Source: Vitrella brassicaformis CCMP3155 (lineage: Eukaryota > Protista > Chromerida). Taken from it: DNA of 64,000 bases. A program made the translations under genes and the position numbers. The notes below the pieces were generated by a model. That model ran no database searches. It was not told the origin of the DNA and saw only the letters and a list, made by a program, of their open reading frames with translations. This document shows, piece after piece, positions 41,601 through 57,100 of the stretch (the first letter of the stretch is position 1; every line of letters begins with the position of its first letter). The DNA lies in assembly GCA_001179505.1 (NCBI GenBank), contig CDMY01000257.1:83088-147087 (forward strand), in the 5' to 3' direction.

Positions 41601-42706
41601 AGCAGGTCGCTGACGATGAGGGAGAGGATCTGACCGAGGAGAAAGACGGGCAACAGGAGACAGATGGGGTGGAGCCGGCTCATGGCGACGAGGTCGAGAA
41701 TGGGGGTGTCGTGGAGCCTCTGCACGAGGGCGCTCTGACGCTGTCGGGCGTGCCGCAGGGAAAGCTCCAGGCCATCCTCTACCTCGAACAAATCAGAGAG
41801 AGGAACAAAGTGAGAGCAAACAGACACGGACAAGCAAGCATGGCTTAGTACTTCTGCACTCTTCTCCCTTCCTTTGCCCTTCTCAGCCCCGCGAGCCGCC
41901 CAAGCCTCCGCCGAAGGCCCCCTTCTTCCTGCCCACTCGCTACGAAGGCGTCGACCTCAAATTCGCCCCCCTGGCTGCCGACGAGGCACTCGTCGAGGAT
42001 GAGGAGGGAGGGGAAAGCGAGCGTGCTGAGCAACCAACTGCCAAGCGAGTGCGGCGGTCAGCGAGTGGGATGACGGCATTTCAGCGTCTCGTGAAGAAGG
42101 GCAAGTACGATGCGATGCTGAATGCGTTGAAGGGCATGACGCCCTCTGGGGTGCACGTGGCGTTGTCGCAACTGGGGCCGCTGGCAGGGGGGACGATCAA
42201 GGAAGTAAGGGAAGAGGGAGTGAGAGGGCAGTGAGTGCTGAGAAAATGGCACCGTTGTCGTCACGTGCAGATAATAAGTGTCTTGGGGTTCTTTGAGCAC
42301 TACCTCGATCGTCGTGATGAGGCCGACCTGATCCAGACGCTGCTGTACACCTTCCTACAGGTAGGAATGCCACACGCAGCGACGGGACAGATGGGAAAGA
42401 GGTAGGTCAGTCAGCTTGCCCGCTCTTTGTGTCAGTTTCACCACCACTGGCTGTTTGGTGACCCCGACCCCTCGACCGACCCGAGCGAACACGCCGCTCT
42501 CATCGACGCCGCCAGCCGTGTTGTCAGCCGACTTGACGATGACTGGAAGGTGCTGGACCACCAGTTCCAGCACCTGTTCTGCTCTATCAAACTCCTGACA
42601 CACCTGCAGGTGAGGTGATAAAAAAACTGGCTGGTCGGTGCATGTTTGAATGCGGCCTCTGTGTGTCTTGTATCTTGTGTCTGCATCTCTGCAGATGGAG
42701 ACTTAG
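38650..42706 (+). CDS. UTP21: U3 snoRNA-associated WD40 protein Utp21/WDR36 (UTP-B complex)
   Basis: SNLFYPARTIGLV...VPF-like start, HPPTYLNKVL, WD repeats, C-terminal PFFLPT, GVHVALSQL, FFEHYLDRRDEADLIQTLLYTFLQ|FHHHWL. Last mini-exon MET* at 42695-42706. Confidence 0.9.
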
Positions 42707-43056
42707 AGAGTGAGCATGGTGTATGTGTTTTGCGTTGTCAGGGGAACGGATCGTGTGCATAGAGCGTGACGCATAAGGGGTGTGGTGAAATCCGCCATTT
42801 GACGTACGATTGCAAGAAGCGCGACTTGGTCTACATGAGACACATTCATTCGTCAGATATATGAATCGGAATGGTACAATAAGCAATGAGCATGAGTCAG
42901 ACAGTCAAGTGGATAAGAAAACCGAAGCAGCAGCAGCAGCTCGCGCGAGCAGGGAGAGCCGTCGTCGTCTAGCGCAGCGTTTCCCGCGTCTGTGGCGGCA
43001 CAGAACGAGACGAATGGGGAATACGGAGGGAAAGAGGGAGAGGCCGAGGGGGGCTG

Positions 43057-43356
43057 NNNNNNNNNNNNNNNNNNNNNNNNNNNNNNNNNNNNNNNNNNNN
43101 NNNNNNNNNNNNNNNNNNNNNNNNNNNNNNNNNNNNNNNNNNNNNNNNNNNNNNNNNNNNNNNNNNNNNNNNNNNNNNNNNNNNNNNNNNNNNNNNNNNN
43201 NNNNNNNNNNNNNNNNNNNNNNNNNNNNNNNNNNNNNNNNNNNNNNNNNNNNNNNNNNNNNNNNNNNNNNNNNNNNNNNNNNNNNNNNNNNNNNNNNNNN
43301 NNNNNNNNNNNNNNNNNNNNNNNNNNNNNNNNNNNNNNNNNNNNNNNNNNNNNNNN
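43057..43356. other. Assembly gap (300 N)
   Basis: Run of N. Confidence 1.
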
Positions 43357-43505
43357 GACCACCAGTTCCAGCACCTGCTCTGCTCTATCAAACTCCTGAC
43401 ACACCTGCAGGTGACGTGACAGTAGACAAGATGGCGGGCGTGTCTGTGGATGCGGCCTTCTGTGTCTTCTATCGTGTATCTGCATCTCTGCAGATGGAGA
43501 CTTAG
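43357..43505 (+). pseudogene. Duplicated 3' end of UTP21 (fragment, abuts gap)
   Basis: DHQFQHLLCSIKLLTHLQ|MET*. Highly similar to 42557-42706 and near-identical to 44897-45045. Confidence 0.75.
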
Positions 43506-43872
43506 AGAGCGTGTATGTGCTTTGCGTCGTCATGAAGATAGGTCGTGTGCATAGGACGTGACACATAAGGTATGGAAGTGAGCATTTCGAGTCTGCGGTT
43601 GTCAAACTCTCTACCAAAAAGTAAGTAAAAAGTCAGTGAGTGACGACGCCATTAAGACAGCACGACAAGAAAGGGCCATCGACCAATTACCCCAGACAGA
43701 CCAGACAGCACATCCATGGGCACAAGCGAGTCGCCCGTGCCGCAGAGGCAGCCTGGCAGGGCTTCCTTCTCCCGTCACAGCTACATCATCGCATCCCCAC
43801 ACTACACACACACTGACACTCCCTGGCTTCCGCCATCCCACTCGTTGGCCCCACCTCGCTTGAGGTGTGCCA

Positions 43873-44157
43873 TCAGCAGTTGAGGAGGCAGTCATCCTCA
43901 CATATCTCCCTCTCTTCGCTGTCTTCCTCATACAAGAGCTCGCAATCCTCGTAGCAGCAGCACTCTCTATCCGGATCATCGAAACAGTCCTGCACACGAC
44001 AAGGTGATGGACACGCTCAACCCATGGCGCTCAATTGACGAAAATCCTCTTCTGTGAGCGTCCTTACAACTTGCTCCGGCGAAGCTCTTCCAAGCGCAGG
44101 GGGCACGTGTGCTGCCAGGAGAGCCACAAGGGCAACGACGAACCACAGGAACCTCAT
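43873..44157 (-). CDS. Small secreted acidic Cys-rich peptide, copy 1 (68 aa, 8 Cys)
   Basis: Exon 1 44157-44068 MRFLWFVVALVALLAAHVPPALGRASPEQV; intron GTAAGG...GTGCAG (44067-43990); exon 2 43989-43873 DCFDDPDRECCCYEDCELLYEEDSEEREICEDDCLLNC*. Confidence 0.85.
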
Positions 44158-44258
44158 ACTTGTGAAGTGACAGCCAGCCACCAGATGCACACTGTAGAAT
44201 TCAGCTTGTAAACACACTGACGGCCGTTGGGACGTATTCGCACTTTGCAGTTTTCTGT

Positions 44259-44372
44259 ATGCTTCCGTGGTTTCCTGCGACTGTGTTGGTCATCTTGCTG
44301 AGTCAATGGGAGAGGAGGGGTGCTGTGGCTCAGTTCACGACGGCCTGCCTGAGCAACAACAACAGAACAGAC
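44259..44372 (+). pseudogene. Truncated first exon of the large secreted protein, fused out of frame to UTP21-derived DNA
   Basis: MLPWFPATVLVILLSQWERRGAVAQFTTACLSNNNRTD matches 45805 onward, then switches at about 44373-44381 to sequence matching UTP21 at about 42045. Confidence 0.75.
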
Positions 44373-44380
44373 CACTGTCT

Positions 44381-45045
44381 AGCGAGTGCGGCGGTCAGCG
44401 AGTGGGATGACGGCATTTCAGCGTCTCGTGAAGAAGGGCAAGTACGATGCGATGCTGAATGCGTTGAAGGGCATGACGCCCTCAAGGATTCACGTGGCGT
44501 TGTCGCGACTGGGGCCGCTGGCAGGAGGAACGATCAAGGAAGTAAGAAGAGAGAGAGAGAGTGAGAGGGCAGTGAGTGCGAGGAAACGCCACCGTTGTCG
44601 TCACGTGCAGATAATAAGTGTCTTGGGGGTTCTTTGAGCACTACCTCGATCGTCGTGATGAGGCCGACTTGATCCAGACGCTGCTGTACACCTTCCTACA
44701 GGTGAGAATGCCACACGCAGCGACCTGACAGATGGAAAAGAGGTTGGTCAGTCAGCTTGCCCGCTATTTGTGTCAGTTTCACCACCACTGGCTGTTTGGT
44801 GACCCCGACCCCTAGACCGACCCGAGCGAACACGCCGCTCTCGTCGACGTCGCCAGCCGTGTTGTCAGCCGAGTTGACGATGACTGGAAGGTGCTGGACC
44901 ACCAGTTCCAGCACCTGCTCTGCTCTATCAAACTCCTGACACACCTGCAGGTGACGTGACAGTAGACAAGATGGCGGGCGTGTCTGTGGATGCGGCCTTC
45001 TGTGTCTTCTATCGTGTATCTGCATCTCTGCAGATGGAGACTTAG
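44381..45045 (+). pseudogene. Duplicated 3' exons of UTP21 with a frameshift
   Basis: Aligns to 42045-42706. An extra G in TTGGGGGTT (vs TTGGGGTT) turns IISVLGFFEHY into IISVLGVL*. No 5' part present. Confidence 0.85.
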
Positions 45046-45405
45046 AGAGCGTGTATGTGCTTTGCGTCGTCATGAAGATAGGTCGTGTGCATAGGACGTG
45101 ACACATAAGGCATGGAAGTGAGCATTTCGAGTCTGCGGTTGTCAAACTCTCTACCAAAAAGTAAGTAAAAAAGTCAGTGACGACGCCATTAAGACAGCAC
45201 GACAAGAAAGGGCCATCGACCAATTACCCCAGACAGACCAGACAGCACATCCATGGGCACAAGCGAGTCGCCCGTACCGCAGAGGCAGCCTGGCAGGGCT
45301 TCCTTCTCACTTCACAGCTACATCATCGCATCCTAACACTACACACTGACACTCCCTGGCTTCCGCCATCCCACTAGTTGGCCCCACCTCGCTTGAGGTG
45401 TGCCA

Positions 45406-45696
45406 TCAGCAGTTGAGGAGGCAGTCATCCTCACATATCTCCCTCTCTGGGCTGTCTTCATCATACAAGAGCTCGCAATCCTCGTAGCAACAGCACTCTC
45501 TGTCCGGATCATCGAAACAACATATGTCCCCGTTCTCATCGATGCAGTCCTGCACACGACAAATTGATGTACACGCTCAACGACAACCCTCTTCTGTGAG
45601 AGTGCTTACTTGCTCCGGCGAATTATTTCCAAGCGCAGGGGGCACGTGTGCTGCCAGGAGAGCCACAAGGGCAACGACGAACCACAGGAACCTCAT
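45406..45696 (-). CDS. Small secreted acidic Cys-rich peptide, copy 2 (76 aa, 10 Cys)
   Basis: Exon 1 45696-45610 MRFLWFVVALVALLAAHVPPALGNNSPEQ; intron GTAAGC...GTGCAG (45609-45550); exon 2 45549-45406 DCIDENGDICCFDDPDRECCCYEDCELLYDEDSPEREICEDDCLLNC*. Confidence 0.88.
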
Positions 45697-45804
45697 ACTT
45701 GTGAAGTGACAGCCAGCCACCAGATGCACGCTGTAGAATTCAGCTTGTAAACACACTGACGGCGACCGTTGCGAATTTAGCATTGCTGAATTGCAGTTTT
45801 CTGT

Positions 45805-48800
45805 ATGCTTCCGTGGTTTTCTGCGACTGTGTTGGTCATCTTGCTGAGTCAATGGGCGAGGAGGGGTGCTGTGGCTCAGTTCACGACGGCCTGTCTGAGC
45901 AACAACAACAGAACAGACGATGACGGACAGCCGACAGAAACAAACGCAGACTGCCAGCCGGGTAAGCAAGGAAGAACACGCCATCATGCAGGCTCGTTCT
46001 GTTTCTGATCTTCTTCAGCCGTCCTCCCGCGCGGTGAGATCGCCGCGGCGTGCGAGGCCAATGCGCTGCTGCCCATTGTCGACGACCCCGACCTCGGCAA
46101 CTTCGGCCAGTGCTTCTTTGAGAATACCACAAGAAGACTACTCAAGGAGCAACAGACAGATGCCCTGACCACCGATGAGGAGACCGCCGGCGACGTGAGC
46201 GCATCAGGAGAGAATCAGTCCATTATCTGTGGAGAGCCCAGTGTCGTGGAAGATGGCAATATCACGGCGGCGGCCCTCGGCACTGCGGCACTGGGAAGGT
46301 ACGCATTGCTCGTCTAATGTGATGGCACCATCATTCTTTCGCGCGCCTGTCTGTCAGTTGCCCGTCGGACAAGCCCATCTGCGCTCGCACGAGCGACTCC
46401 CGCTTCTGCTACTGCATCGAGGAGGAAGTGGGTCTGTTCGGCGACGTCGCGAACTTCTCGCGCGGCGATGTCAGCCTCGTGCTGGGCGTCGTCAGCGGCC
46501 AGCCATCGTCTCTGTGTTTCCCGGCCGAGCTGGATCCGTGCTTCAATGCAGTCAACCGCTTCGCCGTGCCCTTCGACTGTGCGGGCAGCCTGCCCGTCGT
46601 CGAGAGAAGGGAAGACATTGGGCCCGATGCAAGAGAGCAGAGCTTCATGCCGAACGACCCGCCTCCCGTGCCACAAGAATCGACGTTCGCCCAGCTGGTG
46701 CCCGGCACTTACCTGTTCGAAGACGTGAGCTCTGACGCCTACCTCGACACCATCGGCAACACGGGCACCAATGTGTCGAGCTGCATGAGGATTCAGGGCA
46801 AGAGTGACGATGATAGTGGGCTCGATGATTTTTTCCTCGACCTGTCATGCAACACGACAGAGGGCGTCAGCATCACTCTCCAGTTCACCTGCCCCGAGAC
46901 CGGCCTCTGCTCGAATCGAGCCGGAAACGCCCTCCAGCCTGCAGTCGCCACCATCCAGGGCGTGCTGCAGGTCGAGCAGGCCAGCAATCCGGCGTGCGAA
47001 GGGATTGAGGCGCAGATCGAGGTCACCTTGACGGGCTTTGTGGACGAATCGGAGTCTCTCATCGCTCAGCAATTCGAGTACGACACGAACCAGCGCATTC
47101 TGATCTTCGGCAACGAGACACAGGACGATCTTGTCACTGCACGCGCGATCGGCATTCTCTCGCCCGCGGCCAACACGAGTCTCGGCCTCTTGACGTTCCC
47201 CGATGATGTGCCTGACGAATGTGATGTCCTGCTCAACCAGCGAGTGTTCACAGTGACGTCGGGGCAGACTGAGGCGGGCGGCATCCTTGCACTGGCTGCC
47301 TCCGGATTTGGAAGGAACCTGACGAATGGCGGAGATATCCGAAAGGTATGTTCATTCTTGCTAAGATCGCCACACACGTGTGATGTGTGTGTGTGTGTGT
47401 GTTTCTGTGTTTTCGCATCCTCAGAACCCGTTGGAGATCAGTCAATATGCTGTCGAGAATCGAGATGCCTTCCGGGAGTGCAGTGATCTTTGCGACGAAG
47501 TGGAAGAGGAAAGGAGTTTCGTTTTTCTCGGCCCCGACCGGCGCCGTGCCCTTCTAGGAGAAGTTCTGCCGACTATCTTCTTTCCCATCTACCAGCCGGA
47601 GCAGTCGCCAGACCTGTCGTTCAGCAGTTTCTTCATTGGGGACTCTTTCTTTACAGAAACGACCCTCAAAACCACAGCGTGCTCGGGCGACGAGCGATTC
47701 AATAGGAGTACCAAAAAGGTATCTGCTTTGTGCGCTGAGGCTCTGGACCCTGAGAGGCCCCGATCGTTTGAGCTGTTTGACCCCGAGACAGGCGTGTCGC
47801 TTGATTTTTTTCTGAAGGGCCAACTTGGCAATTTGATCGATGGGAGAGAAGGTACATGTACCAAGCAGCCAGTCGGCCGCCTGACAAGGATGTTTGCATC
47901 TTTTGGTCTCTTGTCGATTGTGTATTGAGCAGTCTTAGCCAATTGCCGAGGGCCGAGGCTGCAAGACCTTCCTGTTGGTGTGCACCCCGGCAGAAACGCG
48001 CCTTTCAGAAGTCAGATTTTGAACTTCGGACGTGGCTTCGACCTTATTGGCGAGACTGTGGGCGTCGCCCTCGCACCAGGCGCTGGAGTCCTCGGAAACG
48101 ATACGTGTGTCAGGGCCAATCTGGAAGGGAGACATACTTGTGCGGATATTGAGGAAGGAGGCGGGCAGAGTCTCAATATTACCATCCAGCTGCTGCAAGG
48201 GGACGATCTTGACACGTCGAGGTGCATTGGGCCAGCGCAAGAACTCCTGGAGAACGCCCGATTGTGTAAGATCGGGTTCGAATGCTGTAAGCAATCAGAA
48301 CAAGTCACAGCTCGCTCCCTGTCGCTTTCAGCCTGTCCATCATGTTGTTGCTTTGTCGTATCTTGTGCTCGTGTCAGTTGAGGCCTGTCCTGAAGTCAAC
48401 TTGACCGCCCCATCTACCGCCCAGCCATCAAGCTATTTTCTGACTGACCCTCCTGCGGAAGATGTCAATGGCACAGATGTCAGCTACTGCCTCGAGATAG
48501 AAAACACTCCAGGTGCAGAGGACTTCCGAGCCCTTTTCAGCTGCGACCCGGACGAGGAGGGGGTTGGTTTGCAAGTGCAGATCAAGTATGACGTTGCTGA
48601 GCTGGATGGACGCGTAGCGCCGATACTCGACGAAACGACAGGGGAGCTGGAGACAGTGGACTTTGCAAATGTGGACTTTAAGGGCGCAGTGAGGCAGGTG
48701 TTTCCCGAAGAGTGCAATGGCACGTTGATGTTTGTTGAAGGTGCGCACACACATATACACGGCAGACAGAGAGACAGATAGACAGACAGGCAGCCAGACA

Positions 48801-50008
48801 GACAGACAGACAGACGGACGGACGGGGAGACGAACGGGCAGGCAGTTAGGTAGGCAGACATGCAGAGAGATGCTCAGCCACTCGGCGACTTGGGATATTC
48901 GGTTGTTGCTGTCGTGTTCTCCTCATGCAGGCACTCTTGTTGGCGGCCTTCTTTTTCAACTGAGCCCTGACGAAGAGCCCCTTGATGGCAGGTACCTCCC
49001 CACCGTTACGCGCTTCGAAAAGGCTCCTGAGATACTCTTCACGAGTAGCGCACCGTTGGGCACCATGGAGTATGTAATTGTTCAAGGCCTGGATCCCAGG
49101 TTCGTCGACGATATCCCGGCCGAGTGCTTCAATCTCACGCAGAAGCTCACTCACATAAAGAGGGCGAGGGTTGAATCTATCGACGACCCGACAGCATTCG
49201 CCTTTAATGTGCCTGGAGTAGAGGTCCATGAACTGACAGATGAGGGCGAGACAGCGGGTGTGTTGGAGGTCGTCACTCGCTCTCCAAGAATCCGTGTATA
49301 CGAGGAGCAGAGGGAAGAAGGGACGGTGCCGAACAGCTTCTTGTCAGAGATTAGGGGGCCTCTGCGTGAAGTCTGTGGAATCAAGGAGATAGGTGCGCAG
49401 AACGTGCATGGATGTCGACACGTATATTCACTGATGTTGCGTTTGCCCTCTGATCCAGACTCTACTGGCATTGCTGTCCAAATCCAATGCCTCCCTCGCG
49501 AGCCCTTCGAGGTGACCGCTGGCGAGCCTGGCCTGAGGCTTACAAGAGAGCAAATCGAGTAACACACGATTTAAAGGGAGAAGAAATCCACAGGGCCTTT
49601 ACTGTGTTGATGTGTGTCTTCAAGTTCTATTGCCCAAGTTGTGACAAACGATGGTAGCACGCCCAGGCTCCAATCGCCGGCCGGCTACAGGCTCAACTGC
49701 TCATGCGACGACCTCGAGCGCATCAAGAATGAGACCAATGGCGGCGACGGGTTCATTGTGCGGACGGTTCCGTTGTTTGTCGACACTGGTGTTGAGGAAG
49801 AAGAGGTGGAGCAGCTCTGCCCTGTGCTTATCAGATGCGGTACGGCGGCAAGAGAGAAAGACAATGGGATGTCTCAATCGATTCGATTCGGTTTTCTCTA
49901 TCAGAGCCGCCAACTGGGACAGACACGGCGGGCTGCGATGCGATTGACCAGGAGATGTCATCGGTGTCGAGTCGCGATGCGCTGTCTCTTGTCAAGACTC
50001 GTCCCTGA
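45805..50008 (+). CDS. Large secreted acidic Cys-containing glycoprotein, copy A (about 10 exons, roughly 1,100 aa), unknown family
   Basis: Signal peptide MLPWFSATVLVILLSQWARRGAVA. Canonical introns keep the frame (first 45962-46018). Many N-x-S/T sequons and an RRLL motif. Ends ...VLIRC|EPPTGTDTAGCDAIDQEMSSVSSRDALSLVKTRP*. Collinear paralogue at 54117. Confidence 0.8.
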
Positions 50009-50043
50009 CTGGCTGTGGCCGGGTGGACAGGTGGACTCACATG

Positions 50044-50343
50044 NNNNNNNNNNNNNNNNNNNNNNNNNNNNNNNNNNNNNNNNNNNNNNNNNNNNNNNNN
50101 NNNNNNNNNNNNNNNNNNNNNNNNNNNNNNNNNNNNNNNNNNNNNNNNNNNNNNNNNNNNNNNNNNNNNNNNNNNNNNNNNNNNNNNNNNNNNNNNNNNN
50201 NNNNNNNNNNNNNNNNNNNNNNNNNNNNNNNNNNNNNNNNNNNNNNNNNNNNNNNNNNNNNNNNNNNNNNNNNNNNNNNNNNNNNNNNNNNNNNNNNNNN
50301 NNNNNNNNNNNNNNNNNNNNNNNNNNNNNNNNNNNNNNNNNNN
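50044..50343. other. Assembly gap (300 N)
   Basis: Run of N. Confidence 1.
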
Positions 50344-51243
50344 TGTAATTGTTCAAGGCCTGGATCCCAGCCTCGTCGAGGACATTCCGGAGGAGTGCTT
50401 CAATCTGACGCAAAAGCTGATTCATAGGAAGAGGGCCAGGACAACTGTGCAAGAGGACGGCGACGTCAGGACAGCATTCGCCTTTAATGTGCCTCAAGTG
50501 GAGGTCCATGAGCTCACAGATGAGGGCGAGCCAACGGGTGTGTTGGAGGTCGTCACTCGCTCTCCAAGAATCCGTGTATACGAGGAGCAGAGGGAAGAAG
50601 GGACGGTGCCGAACAGCTTCTTGTCAGAGATTAGGGGGCCTCTGCGTGAAGTCTGTGAAATCAAGGAGATAGGTGCGCAGAACGTGCATGGATGTCGACA
50701 CGTATATTCACTGATGTTGCGTTTGCCTTCTGATCCAGACTCTACTGGCATTGCTGTCCAAATCCAATGCCTCCCTCGCGAGCCCTTCGAGGTGACCGCT
50801 GGCGAGCCTGGCCTGAGGCTTACAAGAGAGCAAATCGAGTAACACACGATTTAAAGGGAGAAGAAATCCACAGGGCCTTTACTGTGTTGATGTGTGTCTT
50901 CAAGTTCTATTGCCCAAGTTGTGACCAACGATGGCAGCACGCCCAGGCTCCAATCGCCGGCCGGCTACAGGCTCAACTGCTCATGCGACGACCTCGAGCG
51001 CATCAAGAATGAGACCAATGGCGGCGACGGGTTCATTGTGCGGACGGTTCCGTTGTTTGTCGACACTGGTGTTGAGGAAGAAGAGGTGGAGCAGCTCTGC
51101 CCTGTGCTTATCAGATGCGGTACGGCGGCAAGAGAGAAAGACAATGGGATGTCTCAATCGATTCGATTCGGTTTTCTCTATCAGAGCCGCCAACTGGGAC
51201 AGACACGGCGGGCTGCGATGCGATTGATCATCCGTATTACTGA
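50344..51243 (+). CDS. 3' part of a third paralogue (copy C) of the large secreted protein, 5' end in gap
   Basis: VIVQGLDPSLVEDIPEECFNLTQKLIHRKRARTTVQEDGD differs from copies A and B, then becomes near-identical to A. Distinct last exon EPPTGTDTAGCDAIDHPYY*. Confidence 0.65.
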
Positions 51244-51460
51244 AGGCATGTGTCTGTGGATTGCAACCTCGGCCTGCTCTGCACTTCCAGTTTGCCCAGA
51301 CAAATGCTAGGTATGTACTTGTTATGAGACGCGCTGCTGTGCTCTTTGTGCGTAATGTTTTTGTCGACAAGCCATGGACGTACTCATGAATTCTGGTCGA
51401 CATGAGACACATTCATTCGTGAGATGCGTGTGAATCGGTATGGTACAATCAGCAATGAGC

Positions 51461-52013
51461 ACACACTCCAAAGGTCAGCTCTGCCAGTGGGGCCAAGGAA
51501 CGTCGCTGCTTCTCGTGCGCCTGCCTGTCTGTCTGTCTGTCTGTCTGTTTGCAGGTGGGACCTTCGTGTGGGCCAACAAGCACGTGTTCGACCCCTACCT
51601 GCGCGCCCACCTCCTCAGTGGCGTTTCCACACAGCCCATCGACATTGAGGAGCCCACCATCACCAAGCAGGTCGCTGACGATGAGGGAGAGGATCTGACC
51701 GAGGAGAAAGACGGGCAACAGGAGACAGATGGGGTGGAGCCGGCTCATGACGACGAGGCCGAGAATGGGGGTGTCGTGGAGCCTCTGCACGAGGGCGCTC
51801 TGACGCTGTCGGGCGTGCCGCAGGGAAAGCTCCAGGCCATCCTCTACCTCGAACAAAGCAGAGAGAGGAACAAAGTGAGAGCAAACAGACACGGACAAGC
51901 AAGCATGGCTTAGTACTTCTGCACTCTTCTCCCTTCCTTTGCCCTTCTCAGCCCCGCGAGGCCCCCAAGCCTCCCCCGAAGGCCCCCTTCTTCCTGCCCG
52001 CTCGCTACGAAGG
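51461..52013 (+). pseudogene. Internal UTP21 fragment (copy of about 41380-41950)
   Basis: GGTFVWANKHVFDPYLRAHLLSGVSTQPIDIEEPTITKQ...LQAILYLEQSRERNK aligns to UTP21 exons with substitutions. No start present. Confidence 0.8.
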
Positions 52014-52313
52014 NNNNNNNNNNNNNNNNNNNNNNNNNNNNNNNNNNNNNNNNNNNNNNNNNNNNNNNNNNNNNNNNNNNNNNNNNNNNNNNNNNNNNNN
52101 NNNNNNNNNNNNNNNNNNNNNNNNNNNNNNNNNNNNNNNNNNNNNNNNNNNNNNNNNNNNNNNNNNNNNNNNNNNNNNNNNNNNNNNNNNNNNNNNNNNN
52201 NNNNNNNNNNNNNNNNNNNNNNNNNNNNNNNNNNNNNNNNNNNNNNNNNNNNNNNNNNNNNNNNNNNNNNNNNNNNNNNNNNNNNNNNNNNNNNNNNNNN
52301 NNNNNNNNNNNNN
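52014..52313. other. Assembly gap (300 N)
   Basis: Run of N. Confidence 1.
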
Positions 52314-52856
52314 AGCCCTTCGAGGTGACCGCTGGCGAGCCTGGCCTGAGGCTTACAAGAGAGCAAATCGAGTAACACACGATTTAAAGGGAGAAGAAAT
52401 CCACAGGGCCTTTACTGTGTTGATGTGTGTCTTCAAGTTCTATTGCCCAAGTTGTGACAAACGATGGTAGCACGCCCAGGCTCCAATCGCCGGCCGGCTA
52501 CAGGCTCAACTGCTCATGCGACGACCTCGAGCGCATCAAGAATGAGACCAATGGCGGCGACGGGTTCATTGTGCGGACGGTTCCGTTGTTTGTCGACACT
52601 GGTGTTGAGGAAGAAGAGGTGGAGCAGCTCTGCCCTGTGCTTATCAGATGCGGTACGGCGGCAAGAGAGAAAGACAATGGGATGTCTCAATCGATTCGAT
52701 TCGGTTTTCTCTATCAGAGCCGCCAACTGGGACAGACACGGCGGGCTGCGATGCGATTGACCAGGAGATGTCATCGGTGTCGAGTCGCGATGCGCTGTCT
52801 CTTGTCAAGACTCGTCCCTGACTGGCTGTGGCCGGGTGGACAGGTGGACTCACATG
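52314..52856 (+). repeat. Apparently identical copy of 49501-50043 (3' end of copy A)
   Basis: Same bases at offset 2813. One copy ends exactly at a gap and the other begins exactly at a gap. Confidence 0.85.
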
Positions 52857-53735
52857 GATAGAGGAAGCTCGTGAGACACACCGTCAACCCGTCGGCCATA
52901 CCTGAAAGGGGCCTTTCGTCAGGCGAGAGCTTTGTGTTTTTCCTGTGATCGCATTCTCTGCGGCACGTACGTCAGCCACACACGCATGTGTGACCTGCAG
53001 CAGGGTATGCAAAGCGAATCACACAGCACCTTTGTAGCCTGATGTATGCATCAAACGCACGTCGGCTCTCTCTTTGTGTGTGTGTGTGTCTTCTCGCTGC
53101 TCGGCTACATGTATATGTGTGTACGGACGAGCACAGCAATGGCGTATTTGTTGGCAAAGCAAGTGAGCAGTCGACCTCCGTATTGCTATCGATGCATGCT
53201 GTGTTTGTGGGCTGAAACCTCGGCCTGCTCTGCGCCTCATTTGGTGCTGGATATGTGTGAGAATCTTTCCCATGCTGCGCATTTTGTGCATGGCGTCGCT
53301 GGAGGCGAGGCATGAATTGACAGATGATCAACCACCAACTCGTCCGCACGAGAAATGTACACGGTAAGACTCCGATACAAACCAGCAAGCACCACAGGCA
53401 CGTAACACCCAGACACACACCCGATTCAGGAACACCGAAAGAGGATCGCGGCGCCCACAGGCGGCACGGCACGTACCCAGCTAGCAATGCAGAATCCCGA
53501 TTGCGATGAGGGTCCGTGCATTTTCTTCGCATGGTGTGTGGATTCAGTCAGGCCATCCCTCCCTCGCACCTTACGCGTGTATACAAACCGAAAAAGTAAG
53601 TCAACAAGTGACGACGCCATCGACGCAGCACGATGCAAGACGATTAACGACTAATTACCCAGACATTATCACCTCAATGCCTGCCCGCAGCTTGGCTCAC
53701 TGTCTGGGAAAGATCAGCACGTGTGTGAGAAAGGA

Positions 53736-54025
53736 CTAGCAGCCCCGGTCACAATCCGACAAACACACGGTCCTGTCGCGTCCCGACAACTGTCCACAAT
53801 CGTCGTCGCAGCAGCATAGTAGGTTGGCATCACACATACAATCCGGGAGAGGAGGACAGCGCTGCACACATACACACACATGTCCAGGGAGGTTCATCTG
53901 GTGAGCACTGGCTGTTGTGGGCACTCTGTTGCGATTGCGTGTGCTTGCTGCTTGCGCACCTGCCCGAATACAGGGGATGCTGCGAGGAGAGCCACAAGGG
54001 CAACGACGAACCGAAGGAACCTCAT
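53736..54025 (-). CDS. Small secreted Cys-rich peptide, copy 3 (divergent; about 63 aa, 10 Cys)
   Basis: Exon 1 54025-53960 MRFLRFVVALVALLAASPVFGQ; donor GTGCGC; exon 2 53861-53736 RCPPLPDCMCDANLLCCCDDDCGQLSGRDRTVCLSDCDRGC* after the same GTGTGCAG acceptor. An upstream acceptor (CACCAG) is also possible. Confidence 0.82.
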
Positions 54026-54116: not shown

Positions 54117-57100
54117 ATGCTCGCGTGGCTTCCTGCGGCTGTGTTGGTCATCTTGCTGGGTCAATGGGAGAGGAGGGGTGCTGTGGCTCAGTTCACGACG
54201 GCCTGTCTGACCGGCAACACGAGAGAGACCGACGACGGACGGCCGACCGAAACAAACGCAGACTGCCAGGCGGGTAAGCACAACAGGGGGCACGTGAACA
54301 ACAAGTGGATGCGAATGCCTTTCCTTTCTTCAGTCGTGATTCCTGGCGAAGATGGCGATGAGATCTTCTATTCGAGTTGTGAGGCAAATGCGCTGCTGCC
54401 CATCGTCGACAACCCCGACCTGGGCAACTTCGGCCAGTGCTTCTATGAAGATATCGCCCAGGAAGACCTCAAGGAGCAACAGGAGTATGCGCTGAACAAT
54501 GAGGACTCGGATACTTTCGGCAATGTCACTGCGACCAGCGGCAACCAGTCCATTATCTGTGGCGAGCCGAGCGGCGTCACTGGCACAAACATCACCGATC
54601 TGGGCACTGCGGCACTGGGAAGGTAGGAACTGCTCAATGAGTATGGCACCGTAATTTCGTGCTCCTGTCTGTCAGTTGCCCGTCGGACAAGCCCATCTGT
54701 GCCCGCACGAGCGACTCACGGTTCTGCTACTGCATCGAGGAGGAAGTGGGTTTGTTCGGTGACGTGGCCAGCTTCTCGCGCGGCGATGTCAGCCTCGTGC
54801 TGGGCGTCGCCAGCGGCCAGCCATCGTCTCTGTGTTTCCCGGCCGAGCTGGATCCGTGCTTCAATGCAGTCAACCGCTTCGCCGTGCCCTTCGACTGTGC
54901 GGGCAGCCTGCCCGTCGTCGAGAGAAGGGAAGACATTGGGCCCGATCCACGACAGCAGAGGCTGCTGCCGAATGACCCGCCCACCGACCCACAAGAGGCG
55001 ACGTTCGCCCAGCTGGTGCCCGGCACTTATCTCTTCGAAGACGTGCGCTCGGGTGCCTATCTGCCGACCATTGACAACGTGGGCACTGGCAATGTGCCGA
55101 GCTGCATGAGGATTCAGGGCAAGAAGAACGACAGCAATGGGCTTGATGATTTTTTCCTCGACCTGTCATGCAACACGACAGAGGGCGTCAGTGTCACCCT
55201 CCAGTTCACCTGCCCCGAGACCGGCCTCTGCTCCAATCGAGCCGGCAACGCCCTCCAGCCTGCAGTTGCCACCATCCAGGGCGTGCTGCAGGTCGAGCAG
55301 GCCAGCAATCCGGCATGCGAGGGAATCGAGGCGCAGATCGAGGTCGCCCTGACGGGCTTCGTGGACGAGTCGGAGTCTCTCATTGCCCAACAATTCGAGT
55401 ACAACCAGACTCAGCGGATTCTGATCTTCGGCAACGAGGAGCAGGACGACCTCGTCACTGCACGCTTGATCGGCATTCTCTCGCCCGCGGCCAACACGAG
55501 TCTCGGCCTCCTGACGTTCCCCGATGACGTGCCTGACGAATGTGATGCCCTGCTCAACCAGCGAGTGTTCACAGTGACGTCGGGCCAGACCGAGGCGGGC
55601 GGCATTATCGGGCTGGCTGCCTCAGGTTTTGGGCGAGACGTGGAGAGCGGCAATACCATCCGCAAGGTGCAGGCTTGGGCCAGTGGCTCACTCTCTCCCC
55701 GTCCAGCAATGACGAATGCCCGTGTCTCTCTCTGTGTGTTCTTAGAGGCCGTTGGAGTTGAATGAGGATGCCAAAGCCAATCGAACAGCGTTCTTGGACT
55801 GCAGCAATTTCTGCGTGCGGGCGGAGCAAAGCAGAGATGACGATGAGGCGGTCGGAAACAGAGACACAGAGGACAGCGAACTCGTCTTTCTCGGGAAGGA
55901 CCTGGGCCGTGCGCTGCTTGGAGAAGTCCTGCCGACCATTTTCTTTCCCATCTACGAGCCCGGAAAGTCACCAGACCTGTCGTTCAGCAGCTTCTTTCTT
56001 GGGGACTCTTTCTTTGCGAGCACGACCCTCGATACCACAGTGTGCTCCGGCGACGATCGATTTGATGGGTTGCCACTCCCGGCGTTAGCTCTCTGCACTA
56101 AGGCCCTACCAGAGGCGCCTCGATCCTTTGAGCTCTTCGATACGGAGACAGGCACCCAGCTTGACTTCATCATCAAGGTACACCATTTCACACAACACCC
56201 GTACATCTGTCCGTCTCTGTGCTGCCCCTGTGTGAAGGGCCAGCTGGGAAAGCTGATCGATGGGAGACAAGGTACATGAACCAGGCAGTCAGACAGCACA
56301 CGGCCATCAGTGCCTGTCTTGTTGCTGATGTGTCTCGAAGTGTTGACTAATTGCCGTGGGCAAAGGCTGCAAGACCTCCCTGTCGGTGTGGACCCTGGAG
56401 GAGGGTCACCCTTTCTCTTTAATCAGATCTCCGGCCGGGGTATTGGCGAGACTGTGGGTATCGCCCTCGCACCCGACGCTGGAGACCTCGGAGGCAATAC
56501 GTGCGTCACAACCAGACAAAGAGGGGACAAAAGAAGGCTGCATAGTTGTATGGGGATAATGGAGGACAGGGAGCAGAGCGTGAACGTTTCCATCCTGCTG
56601 CGGCCAGGAAACGGCAGTGAGACGGCGGGGTGTTCTGGTGGAGGGGGAAGAAATCTTACAGATCAAATAATGGAGGAGGCAGACATATGCTTCATCGGAT
56701 ACACCTGTTGTAAGGCTTTCATGAACCCTCGCTCTTAACTATTTTCGTTTTTTGATGTTTGCTTCCCTTCTCTTTATTTCAGTTGAGGCATGTCCTCAGG
56801 TCAACTTGACGACCACACCCCCTACAGCCCAGCCGTCGAGCTATCTTCTGACGGACCGCCTGAGCGAGACGACCAATGGCGCAAATGTCAGCTACTGCCT
56901 GGAGCTGATCGATGAGGACTTCCGAGCCCTTTTCACTTGCGACCCGGACGAGGAAGACCCAGACGAGGAAGGGGTTGGTTTGCAAGTGCGGATCAGATAC
57001 GACGTTGCGGAGCTAGACGGACGCGTTGTCAACATCATAGACAACACGACAGGGGAGCTGGCGACCGTGGACGTTGCGAATGTGGACTTTAAGGGCGCAG

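Follow-up and report, generated by a model that had tools for sequence, protein, structure and literature searches.

Small cysteine-rich, predicted secreted peptides of Vitrella brassicaformis form a gene family paired head-to-head with an orphan protein family

Toxins, defence peptides and pheromones are known to combine a conserved leader with a fixed cysteine scaffold and variable loops, a pattern that has not yet been described in chromerids. These live with corals and are, among free-living photosynthetic organisms, the nearest relatives of the apicomplexan parasites. Here we describe a family of small Cys-rich peptide genes in the chromerid Vitrella brassicaformis CCMP3155. Three of them lie on the minus strand of a 64,000-nucleotide stretch of DNA (the window; scaffold C257, positions 83088-147087), and genome searches covered the 72.7 Mb, 1064-scaffold assembly of this strain. 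Nearly all members are encoded head-to-head with a paralog of a single orphan family of predicted secreted proteins, below called partners. Among the described systems that invite comparison, the pheromones of Euplotes have conserved pre-pro regions and variable mature regions. In the Brassica S-locus system SCR/SP11-SRK, tightly linked genes encode a small, hypervariable and Cys-rich secreted peptide and a larger protein that is itself secreted or exposed at the surface. Metallothioneins are cytosolic, have no signal peptide and bind metal as thiolates in C-x-C and C-x-x-C clusters. Conotoxins combine a conserved leader, fixed Cys residues and hypervariable loops between them (PMC3823881), and the α-hairpinins and CS-α/α toxins share the motif XnCX3CXnCX3CXn (PMC7191063).

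Re-reading of the window bore out the three two-exon minus-strand genes that a first-pass annotation had placed at 43873-44157 (copy 1), 45406-45696 (copy 2) and 53736-54025 (copy 3), and recomputation gave the same phase-0 introns, shared signal peptide, CCC framework and Cys counts of 8, 10 and 10. Exon 1 of copy 1 (44068..44157; 30 codons from the ATG at 44157) encodes the predicted signal peptide MRFLWFVVALVALLAAHVPPALG followed by RASPEQV. A 78-nt, phase-0 intron (43990..44067, GTAAGG..GTGTGCAG) separates it from exon 2 (43873..43989), which encodes 38 amino acids with 8 Cys and 17 Asp or Glu residues and ends in TGA. In copy 2 the same predicted signal peptide is followed by NNSPEQ in an exon of 29 codons (45610..45696); a phase-0 intron of 60 nt lies between the exon ends at 45610 and 45549, and exon 2 (45406..45549) encodes 47 amino acids with 10 Cys and 19 acidic residues before a TGA. 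Exon 1 of copy 3 (53960..54025, 22 codons) reads MRFLRFVVALVALLAASPVFGQ, and its first 48 nt match copies 1 and 2 at 45 of 48 positions (94%). The intron of copy 3, between the exon ends at 53960 and 53861, is a phase-0 GT..AG intron of 98 nt with the same acceptor, GTGTGCAG, as in copies 1 and 2; an alternative acceptor may lie 36 nt upstream, which would join 53960 to 53897. Exon 2 (53736..53861) encodes 41 amino acids with 10 Cys and ends in TAG. The acidic fractions given earlier for copies 1 and 2 (17/38 and 19/47) were correct, and that of copy 3 is 8/41. The junctions listed earlier as 44067/43990, 45609/45550 and 53959/53862 are at the right places, the numbers being the first and last intron bases.

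Retention of the intron in any of the three copies leads to a translation stop inside it. The framework CCC-x3-C-x13/13/10-C-x3-C-x3-C-stop holds in copies 1, 2 and 3, respectively. Compared with copy 1, exon 2 of copy 2 is longer by an insertion of 27 nt (9 codons), which supplies exactly two more Cys; further changes between the two copies lie directly behind the signal and in the loop. By inspection the leader consists of an n-region (MR), a hydrophobic core of 14 residues and small residues at -3 and -1; judged by eye, the N-terminus has the appearance of a signal peptide. The window contains three instances of the 41-nt signal-peptide pattern, and 100 shuffles contained none. A plastid-targeting leader was considered and rejected: the stretch behind the signal is short and acidic or Cys-rich, unlike a transit peptide. 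Downstream of the three genes, on the same strand, a block of the pattern GGGTAATT.GTCG ... TCGTGCTG ... ATGGCGTCGTCACT (43630-43692, 45167-45229 and 53598-53660) is kept in all copies though the neighbouring flank has diverged. It recurs downstream of a fourth, out-of-window gene (L040) and may be a 3' untranslated region (UTR) or termination element.

Expression was examined in four public runs, which were aligned as assembled contigs to 43600-49500. GT..AG joints mark runs X1 and X8 as RNA-like, whereas X3 and X4 cover the introns and are DNA-like. An X1 contig that ends at 43989 continues with the 10 nt AACTTGCTCC, which are exactly those of 44068-44077; the contig thus joins 44068 to 43989, the copy-1 splice junction. 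A second X1 contig, placed on the copy-2 homolog, holds the same copy-1 junction, a 141-nt X1 contig on 44067-44188 spans exon 1 of copy 1 and 31 nt of 5' UTR, and exon 2 of copy 1 is overlain by contigs of both X1 and X8. The X8 contig at 43682-43972, comprising exon 2 and 3' UTR, carries copy-2-like substitutions, so a variant of the peptide is expressed in X8. No copy-2-specific RNA contig (exon 1 included) was seen among the X1 contigs over 43600-49500. Among the splice junctions proposed earlier, the one of copy 1 is therefore present in RNA-like contigs, while copies 2 and 3 are without copy-specific RNA evidence. The genes had also been described as hidden, which does not apply to the first two: public models identical to the predicted products exist for copy 1 (CEL97867.1, 68 amino acids, P0002) and copy 2 (CEL97868.1, 76 amino acids, P0001). 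Copy 3 alone is unmatched, and it was not found as a protein of 23-72 amino acids in a set of 5.8 billion proteins.

The three genes are part of a larger family. The head-to-head position beside partner paralogs was scanned and the new sequences were then used as queries, which gave at least 11 genes on four scaffolds rather than the three of the first-pass annotation; at least eight predicted members, read from the genome sequence, lie beyond the window. Models beyond the window lie at C770 65923-66140 and about 82.6-83.4 kb, at C257 14643-14995, 65982-66361, 71725-72122 and 74304-74704, and at C297 125514-125899. The new genes have a leader beginning MRFLW.. or MRLL.. and a C-terminal Cys-rich exon, and the family falls into subfamilies A, B and C. 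Subfamily A comprises copies 1-3 and L040, which has a phase-0 intron of 62 nt and reads ICCSECDDEFDDPDDIEDCLFDCLQC up to its stop codon. Subfamily B (L034, L035, L037 and L069) has a long pro-region with RR sites, a phase-1 intron and the pattern CC-x2-C-x8-C-x3/4-C-x2-4-C. Subfamily C (L039, L041 and L063, with the remnant L064) is built from modules of 18 amino acids. The common core is a six-Cys pattern, CC-x2/3-C-x4..13-C-x3/4-C-x2..4-C; the CCC motif and additional Cys pairs, earlier taken as the family framework, are peculiar to the window copies. The Cys count is even in all 12 modules, and Cys makes up about 20-33% of the peptides. Acidity, correctly noted for copies 1 and 2, is a subfamily trait confined to subfamily A and L037/L069; it is weak in L034/L035, and the modules of subfamily C are without charged residues.

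The predicted gene L063 (C770:81346-84438, minus strand, ATG at locus position 2041) has the most elaborate model, with four exons and introns of 258, 70 and 67 nt. Its product would be a precursor of 103 amino acids with a signal peptide and three 18-residue, six-Cys modules of the form CCS[GS]C[TS][TS][PS][SG]C[FW]A[NS]CNPGC, joined by linkers of the type ..DD.P.RRL.. Each intron cuts a module after CCSx and every splice rebuilds an 18-residue module, the internal exons being the repeat units. L041 has four Cys and an unclear model, and L064 looks like a degenerate remnant.

Close duplicates show where the peptides vary. The L037 peptide gene has a tandem duplicate of 0.6 kb, L069 (L068:1180-1800 versus L069:1186-1776; C257 at about 71.7-74.7 kb). 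Leader and intron are identical at 321 of 326 positions, whereas 22 of the 69 nt of the Cys domain have changed (Fisher 4e-14). The changes are concentrated in a patch of about 45 nt, between the third and the fifth Cys, which differs at about half its positions and is flanked on both sides by near-identical sequence in a duplicate that is otherwise about 99% identical. In addition, a T>C change turns the first stop codon into Arg and makes the peptide one residue longer. Between L034 and L035 the Cys domain has 14.5 non-synonymous and 0.5 synonymous changes, as compared to 24.5 and 13.5 in the leader (Fisher 0.01-0.04). Copy 3 is an older duplicate which retains all 8 Cys of copy 1, the reading frame and the GT..AG intron; identity to copies 1 and 2 is down to 51-57% over its intron, exon 2 and 3' flank (exon 2, 51-56%), and conservation is limited to the initial 48 nt of the leader, the Cys codons and the 3' block. 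It had been noted that copy 3 preserves the Cys framework while changing almost every other residue, which is right, but since the intron is as diverged as exon 2 this reflects old divergence. From these three comparisons, the leader is far more conserved than the mature region and the Cys residues are fixed, so the conserved leader with variable inter-Cys residues, proposed from the window alone, is now seen quantitatively in the close duplicates.

In these respects the peptides resemble conotoxins and other venom-peptide superfamilies. Both have a conserved signal (and pro) region, a mature peptide of about 18-50 amino acids with fixed Cys and hypervariable loops, an intron that parts the leader from the mature exon, and local duplication; the synonymous changes that the variable patch of L037/L069 carries may be counted as a further likeness. 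Unlike conotoxins, which share no sequence similarity with them, the Vitrella peptides have a framework, CC-x2/3-C-xn-C-x3/4-C-x2-4-C, that matched no named conotoxin framework. They are known here from genes, are encoded beside a partner and belong to a unicellular photosynthetic alveolate without venom apparatus.

The family appears to be a Vitrella-specific orphan that is larger than first described. A profile of the three window peptides, run exhaustively with HMMER against 1.84 billion representative proteins, returned the family itself only, and the same profile had no match among all PDB sequences at E<=10. A search of the ESM Atlas was negative, and no homolog outside Vitrella was found in the protein, profile and PDB-sequence searches made. 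P0001, P0002 and the three exon-2 peptides had no Pfam-A match at E<=10 (hmmscan), so the first-pass statement that the peptides belong to no recognised family stands for Pfam, PDB sequences and the 1.84-billion-protein set. UniRef names copy 2 (A0A0G4EM05) 'Tectonic domain-containing'; this label (PF07773, TCTN_DUF1619) was not reproduced by hmmscan. A PF07773 search of the whole genome also gave no match, but its controls gave none either. Public contigs encoding P0001 are not on record in a search from which the window's own genome was possibly excluded. A genome-wide search with a degenerate Cys-codon pattern was unusable, its 850 matches being mostly CTG/TGC repeats. Full-text literature searches turned up neither a publication on peptides of this type in Vitrella nor one that mentions these accessions. 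The models of copies 1 and 2 were thus already public; the family size, partner pairing, common core, predicted L063 polyprotein and hypervariable patch are new.

Structure prediction matched no known fold to these very small (18-50 amino acids), predicted disulfide-rich scaffolds. The AlphaFold2 (AF2) model of copy 2 has helices at 22-28 and 34-46, over both C-x3-C halves (predicted local distance difference test score, pLDDT, 61.5), and that of copy 3 has strands and one helix (pLDDT 62). Foldseek gave nothing significant, the best match on the pLDDT-61 model having E=9.5 and template-modelling (TM) scores of 0.51/0.61 over 29 columns. In the VIA structure search all Z scores were below 3, and Euplotes pheromones (6e6n, Z 2.7; 1erc, Z 2.4; 1ery, Z 2.1), among the top matches to small proteins, and α-hairpinins (Z 2.2-2.6) tied with unrelated helical fragments. 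The analogy to Euplotes pheromones drawn in the first-pass annotation is echoed solely by these non-significant ties (Z 2.1-2.7) on a low-confidence model. The pheromones Er-1, Er-11 and Er-13 are likewise small (38-40 amino acids), acidic, Cys-rich, secreted and from an alveolate; they differ as three-helix bundles with another Cys framework, and kinship in sequence was rejected on the empty PDB profile search. Similar to the α-hairpinins, copies 1-3 contain an embedded twin C-x3-C with a spacer of 10-13 residues, the modelled helices of copy 2 cover both halves, and some hairpinin precursors carry several modules after a single signal peptide, as predicted for L063. The α-hairpinins, however, have exactly four Cys in two disulfides and are usually basic plant seed peptides, whereas the Vitrella peptides have 6-10 Cys; the copy 3 model is not a hairpin, and the four residues between the halves in subfamily C are too short for a helical hairpin. 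By their Cys pattern the peptides fall outside the α-hairpinins, as the extra Cys (8-10 in copies 1-3, 6 in the wider family) break the motif definition.

The partner of copy 2 is a multi-exon plus-strand gene (45805..49500) whose ATG at 45805 lies 108 bp from the peptide ATG and which begins with the predicted signal peptide MLPWFSATVLVILLSQW..; the end given here, 49500, is the edge of the aligned region. The RNA-like runs contain plus-strand GT..AG joints of this gene. The partner of copy 3 (54117..56160, plus strand) starts 91 bp from the peptide ATG, and its exons are 80-100% identical to those of the copy 2 partner, whereas the introns are about 45-57% identical. Beside copy 1 lies a truncated or chimeric partner (44259..45400, plus strand), with its ATG at 44259, 101 bp from the copy-1 ATG. 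It has the partner-type signal-peptide first exon, followed by unrelated exons with another open reading frame (ORF; ..MTAFQRLVKKGKYDAMLNALKG..), and its transcript is spliced in X1 and X8 at 44698>44774 and 44944>45028 (GT..AG). Genome-wide, the main partner exon has 26 matching places at about 20 loci. The partner ORFs had no match in Pfam and no homologs of the partner family were found elsewhere; the predicted partner protein carries N-x-T/S sites.

Considering this evidence, the products are most likely small secreted, disulfide-bonded binding peptides, probably acting in defence or allelopathy or in signalling, a reading to which we assign a probability of roughly 0.62. The conserved N-terminal signal peptide would direct the precursor into the endoplasmic reticulum (ER) and be cut after ..ALG or ..FGQ, and in the two out-of-window subfamilies a Kex2/furin-type protease would probably excise the pro-region or linker bearing RR or RRL. 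The Cys, even in number (6, 8 or 10), would pair into three to five disulfides on the shared core, giving a compact peptide for export. Because the inter-Cys loops change fast while leader and Cys scaffold stay, they are the likely working surface, which would bind a target outside the cell. The most likely roles are defence or allelopathy against microbes, or cell-cell signalling. Each peptide gene would be transcribed divergently from its partner paralog, and new copies would arise by duplication of the two-gene module or of the peptide gene alone. That such a family is specific to one lineage and expressed suggests an arms race or a recognition system operating at the cell surface of this coral-associated alga. 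Several points weigh against this reading. Gene structure, the copy-1 splice, family size, the pairing with the partner family and the localised hypervariability are shown directly; secretion, disulfides, processing and function are what we infer from the sequence. The RNA support consists of assembled contigs of one run and concerns copy 1, and copy 2, copy 3 and the members elsewhere are predicted from sequence logic or public annotation. The kinship of subfamilies A, B and C is suggested by position, orientation, leader (MRFLW or MRLL) and Cys pattern, not by significant scores. Synonymous sites in the L037/L069 patch changed too (dS, the synonymous divergence, is 0.6); patchy gene conversion from another paralog could produce this pattern without positive selection, and micro-conversion of this sort and selection are equally possible. 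Copy 3, whose intron and exon 2 have diverged to the same degree, shows by itself long-term retention of scaffold, frame and splice sites and not accelerated evolution. Finally, the structure models of copies 2 and 3, both of low confidence (pLDDT 61-62), do not agree with each other.

The pairing with partner genes raises the question whether each peptide is a ligand of the secreted protein encoded head-to-head with it, the module diversifying as a unit in the manner of SCR/SRK. A peptide gene stands beside a paralog of the same orphan family in at least nine places, the start codons in the window are 91-108 bp apart, and on a tree of partner exons the subfamily C partners group together with good support (95/93 and 99/99). 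The Brassica system resembles the Vitrella modules in that a small Cys-rich peptide gene and a larger protein gene are inherited or duplicated together; it differs in that the modules are paralogs scattered in one genome and not alleles, and no receptor or kinase domain was recognised in the partner. We nevertheless regard a partner-specific ligand as unlikely: partner exons of different modules share 73-89% identity but their peptides can barely be aligned, the tree does not resolve the partners of A from those of B, the partner paralogs L038, L042 and L044 lack a peptide gene, and the peptides of copy 1 and L069 were duplicated without a full partner. Divergent promoters are, moreover, common in the Vitrella genome (PMC4501334). 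A complex prediction for a 310-residue partner exon with the copy-2 peptide scored 0.00, which is no verdict and speaks neither for nor against binding. The paired arrangement is directly amenable to binding and co-regulation tests. A bolder version, which we hold for quite improbable, takes peptide and own partner as a self-contained recognition module (self/non-self, mating-type or kin) that Vitrella has multiplied and diversified, with the 45-nt patch generated by directed diversification; if true, the patch would reflect cassette-like micro-conversion or targeted mutation, not ordinary drift by point mutation.

The composition of the peptides could also suit secreted binders of metal or Ca2+, similar to metallothioneins or zincophores, with thiolates and/or carboxylates chelating outside the cell. 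The Cys content of about 20-33%, the roughly 40% Asp plus Glu of copies 1, 2 and L040, and the Ser/Gly/Asn/Pro-rich modules of subfamily C, as in metallothioneins, agree with such a function. Against these stand the even Cys counts in 12 of 12 modules and the insertion of exactly two Cys in copy 2, which fit pairing into disulfides, and the fact that ER-routed peptides are normally oxidised. His-rich or C-x-C metallothionein motifs are absent, the window locus has no metal-transporter neighbour, and acidity is missing from subfamily C and weak in L034/L035. Binding of Ca2+ or metal as the family function, suggested in the first-pass annotation, is weakened by the uncharged modules of subfamily C, and we judge it to be an unlikely explanation as well. 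Membership of the metallothioneins proper was rejected because of the predicted signal peptide, the even Cys counts and the lack of a Pfam metallothionein match. A structural or cross-linking role in the cell or sporangium wall, together with the partner as a glycoprotein, would accord with the N-x-T/S sites of the co-located, predicted secreted partner and with the X1 word depth of about 900-1170 over copy 1 against 3-36 over the partner gene, although contig depth cannot rank genes. Structural proteins are, however, usually conserved or repetitive, whereas the present peptides are tiny, with loops that are hypervariable among recent duplicates, which makes this role improbable. It is highly improbable, finally, that the genes are without function, as chance ORFs in untranslated or antisense transcripts or as decaying pseudogenes. 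L064 and L041 do look degenerate and copy 3 has neither RNA nor annotation support, but spliced copy-1 RNA is present, the Cys scaffold, frame and splice sites were kept where intron and flank fell to about 50-57%, and the three-module model of L063 closes perfectly over three introns.

With regard to the local history, copies 1 and 2 form a tandem duplication of 1.54 kb with flanks that are 94-100% identical, and the older duplication that gave rise to copy 3 also took along the divergent plus-strand gene. Between the partner paralogs of copies 2 and 3, 120 nt (46494-46613 and 54812-54931) are 100% identical although the introns are saturated (about 45-57%), which suggests gene conversion or very strong exon constraint. 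The plus-strand transcript of the chimeric partner (44281-45448) converges on and overlaps the 3' end of copy 2, and this region has a paralogous stretch at about 42028-43800. Run X1 carries a 12-nt insertion (GAGGTCGCTAAG) after 44372, and a contig of the DNA-like run X4 joins 45920 back to 44373 with GGTCGCTAAG in between. Together these suggest a collapsed further tandem unit or an allele, and units of the copy-1/2 type possibly number more than two.

The assembly is not continuous in this region. A 300-N gap at 43057-43356 lies 0.5 kb downstream of copy 1 and outside all three genes; since the stretch behind it (43357-43419) repeats 42556-42618, the scaffold join is doubtful. Two further gaps of 300 N each (50044-50343 and 52014-52313) lie between copies 2 and 3, at distances of 4.3 kb and 1.4 kb from the nearest peptide gene. 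None of the three peptide genes contains a gap, and none of their reading frames is disrupted. Both gaps fall at unit boundaries of a tandem array (49073-52900) with units of about 1.28-1.53 kb, in which 49501-49800, 50781-51080 and 52314-52613 are 99-100% identical to each other; the spacing between copies 2 and 3 and the number of array units are uncertain. The array may consist of repeated 3' exons of the partner gene. Spliced plus-strand RNA (48738>48929 and 49390>49457) enters it.

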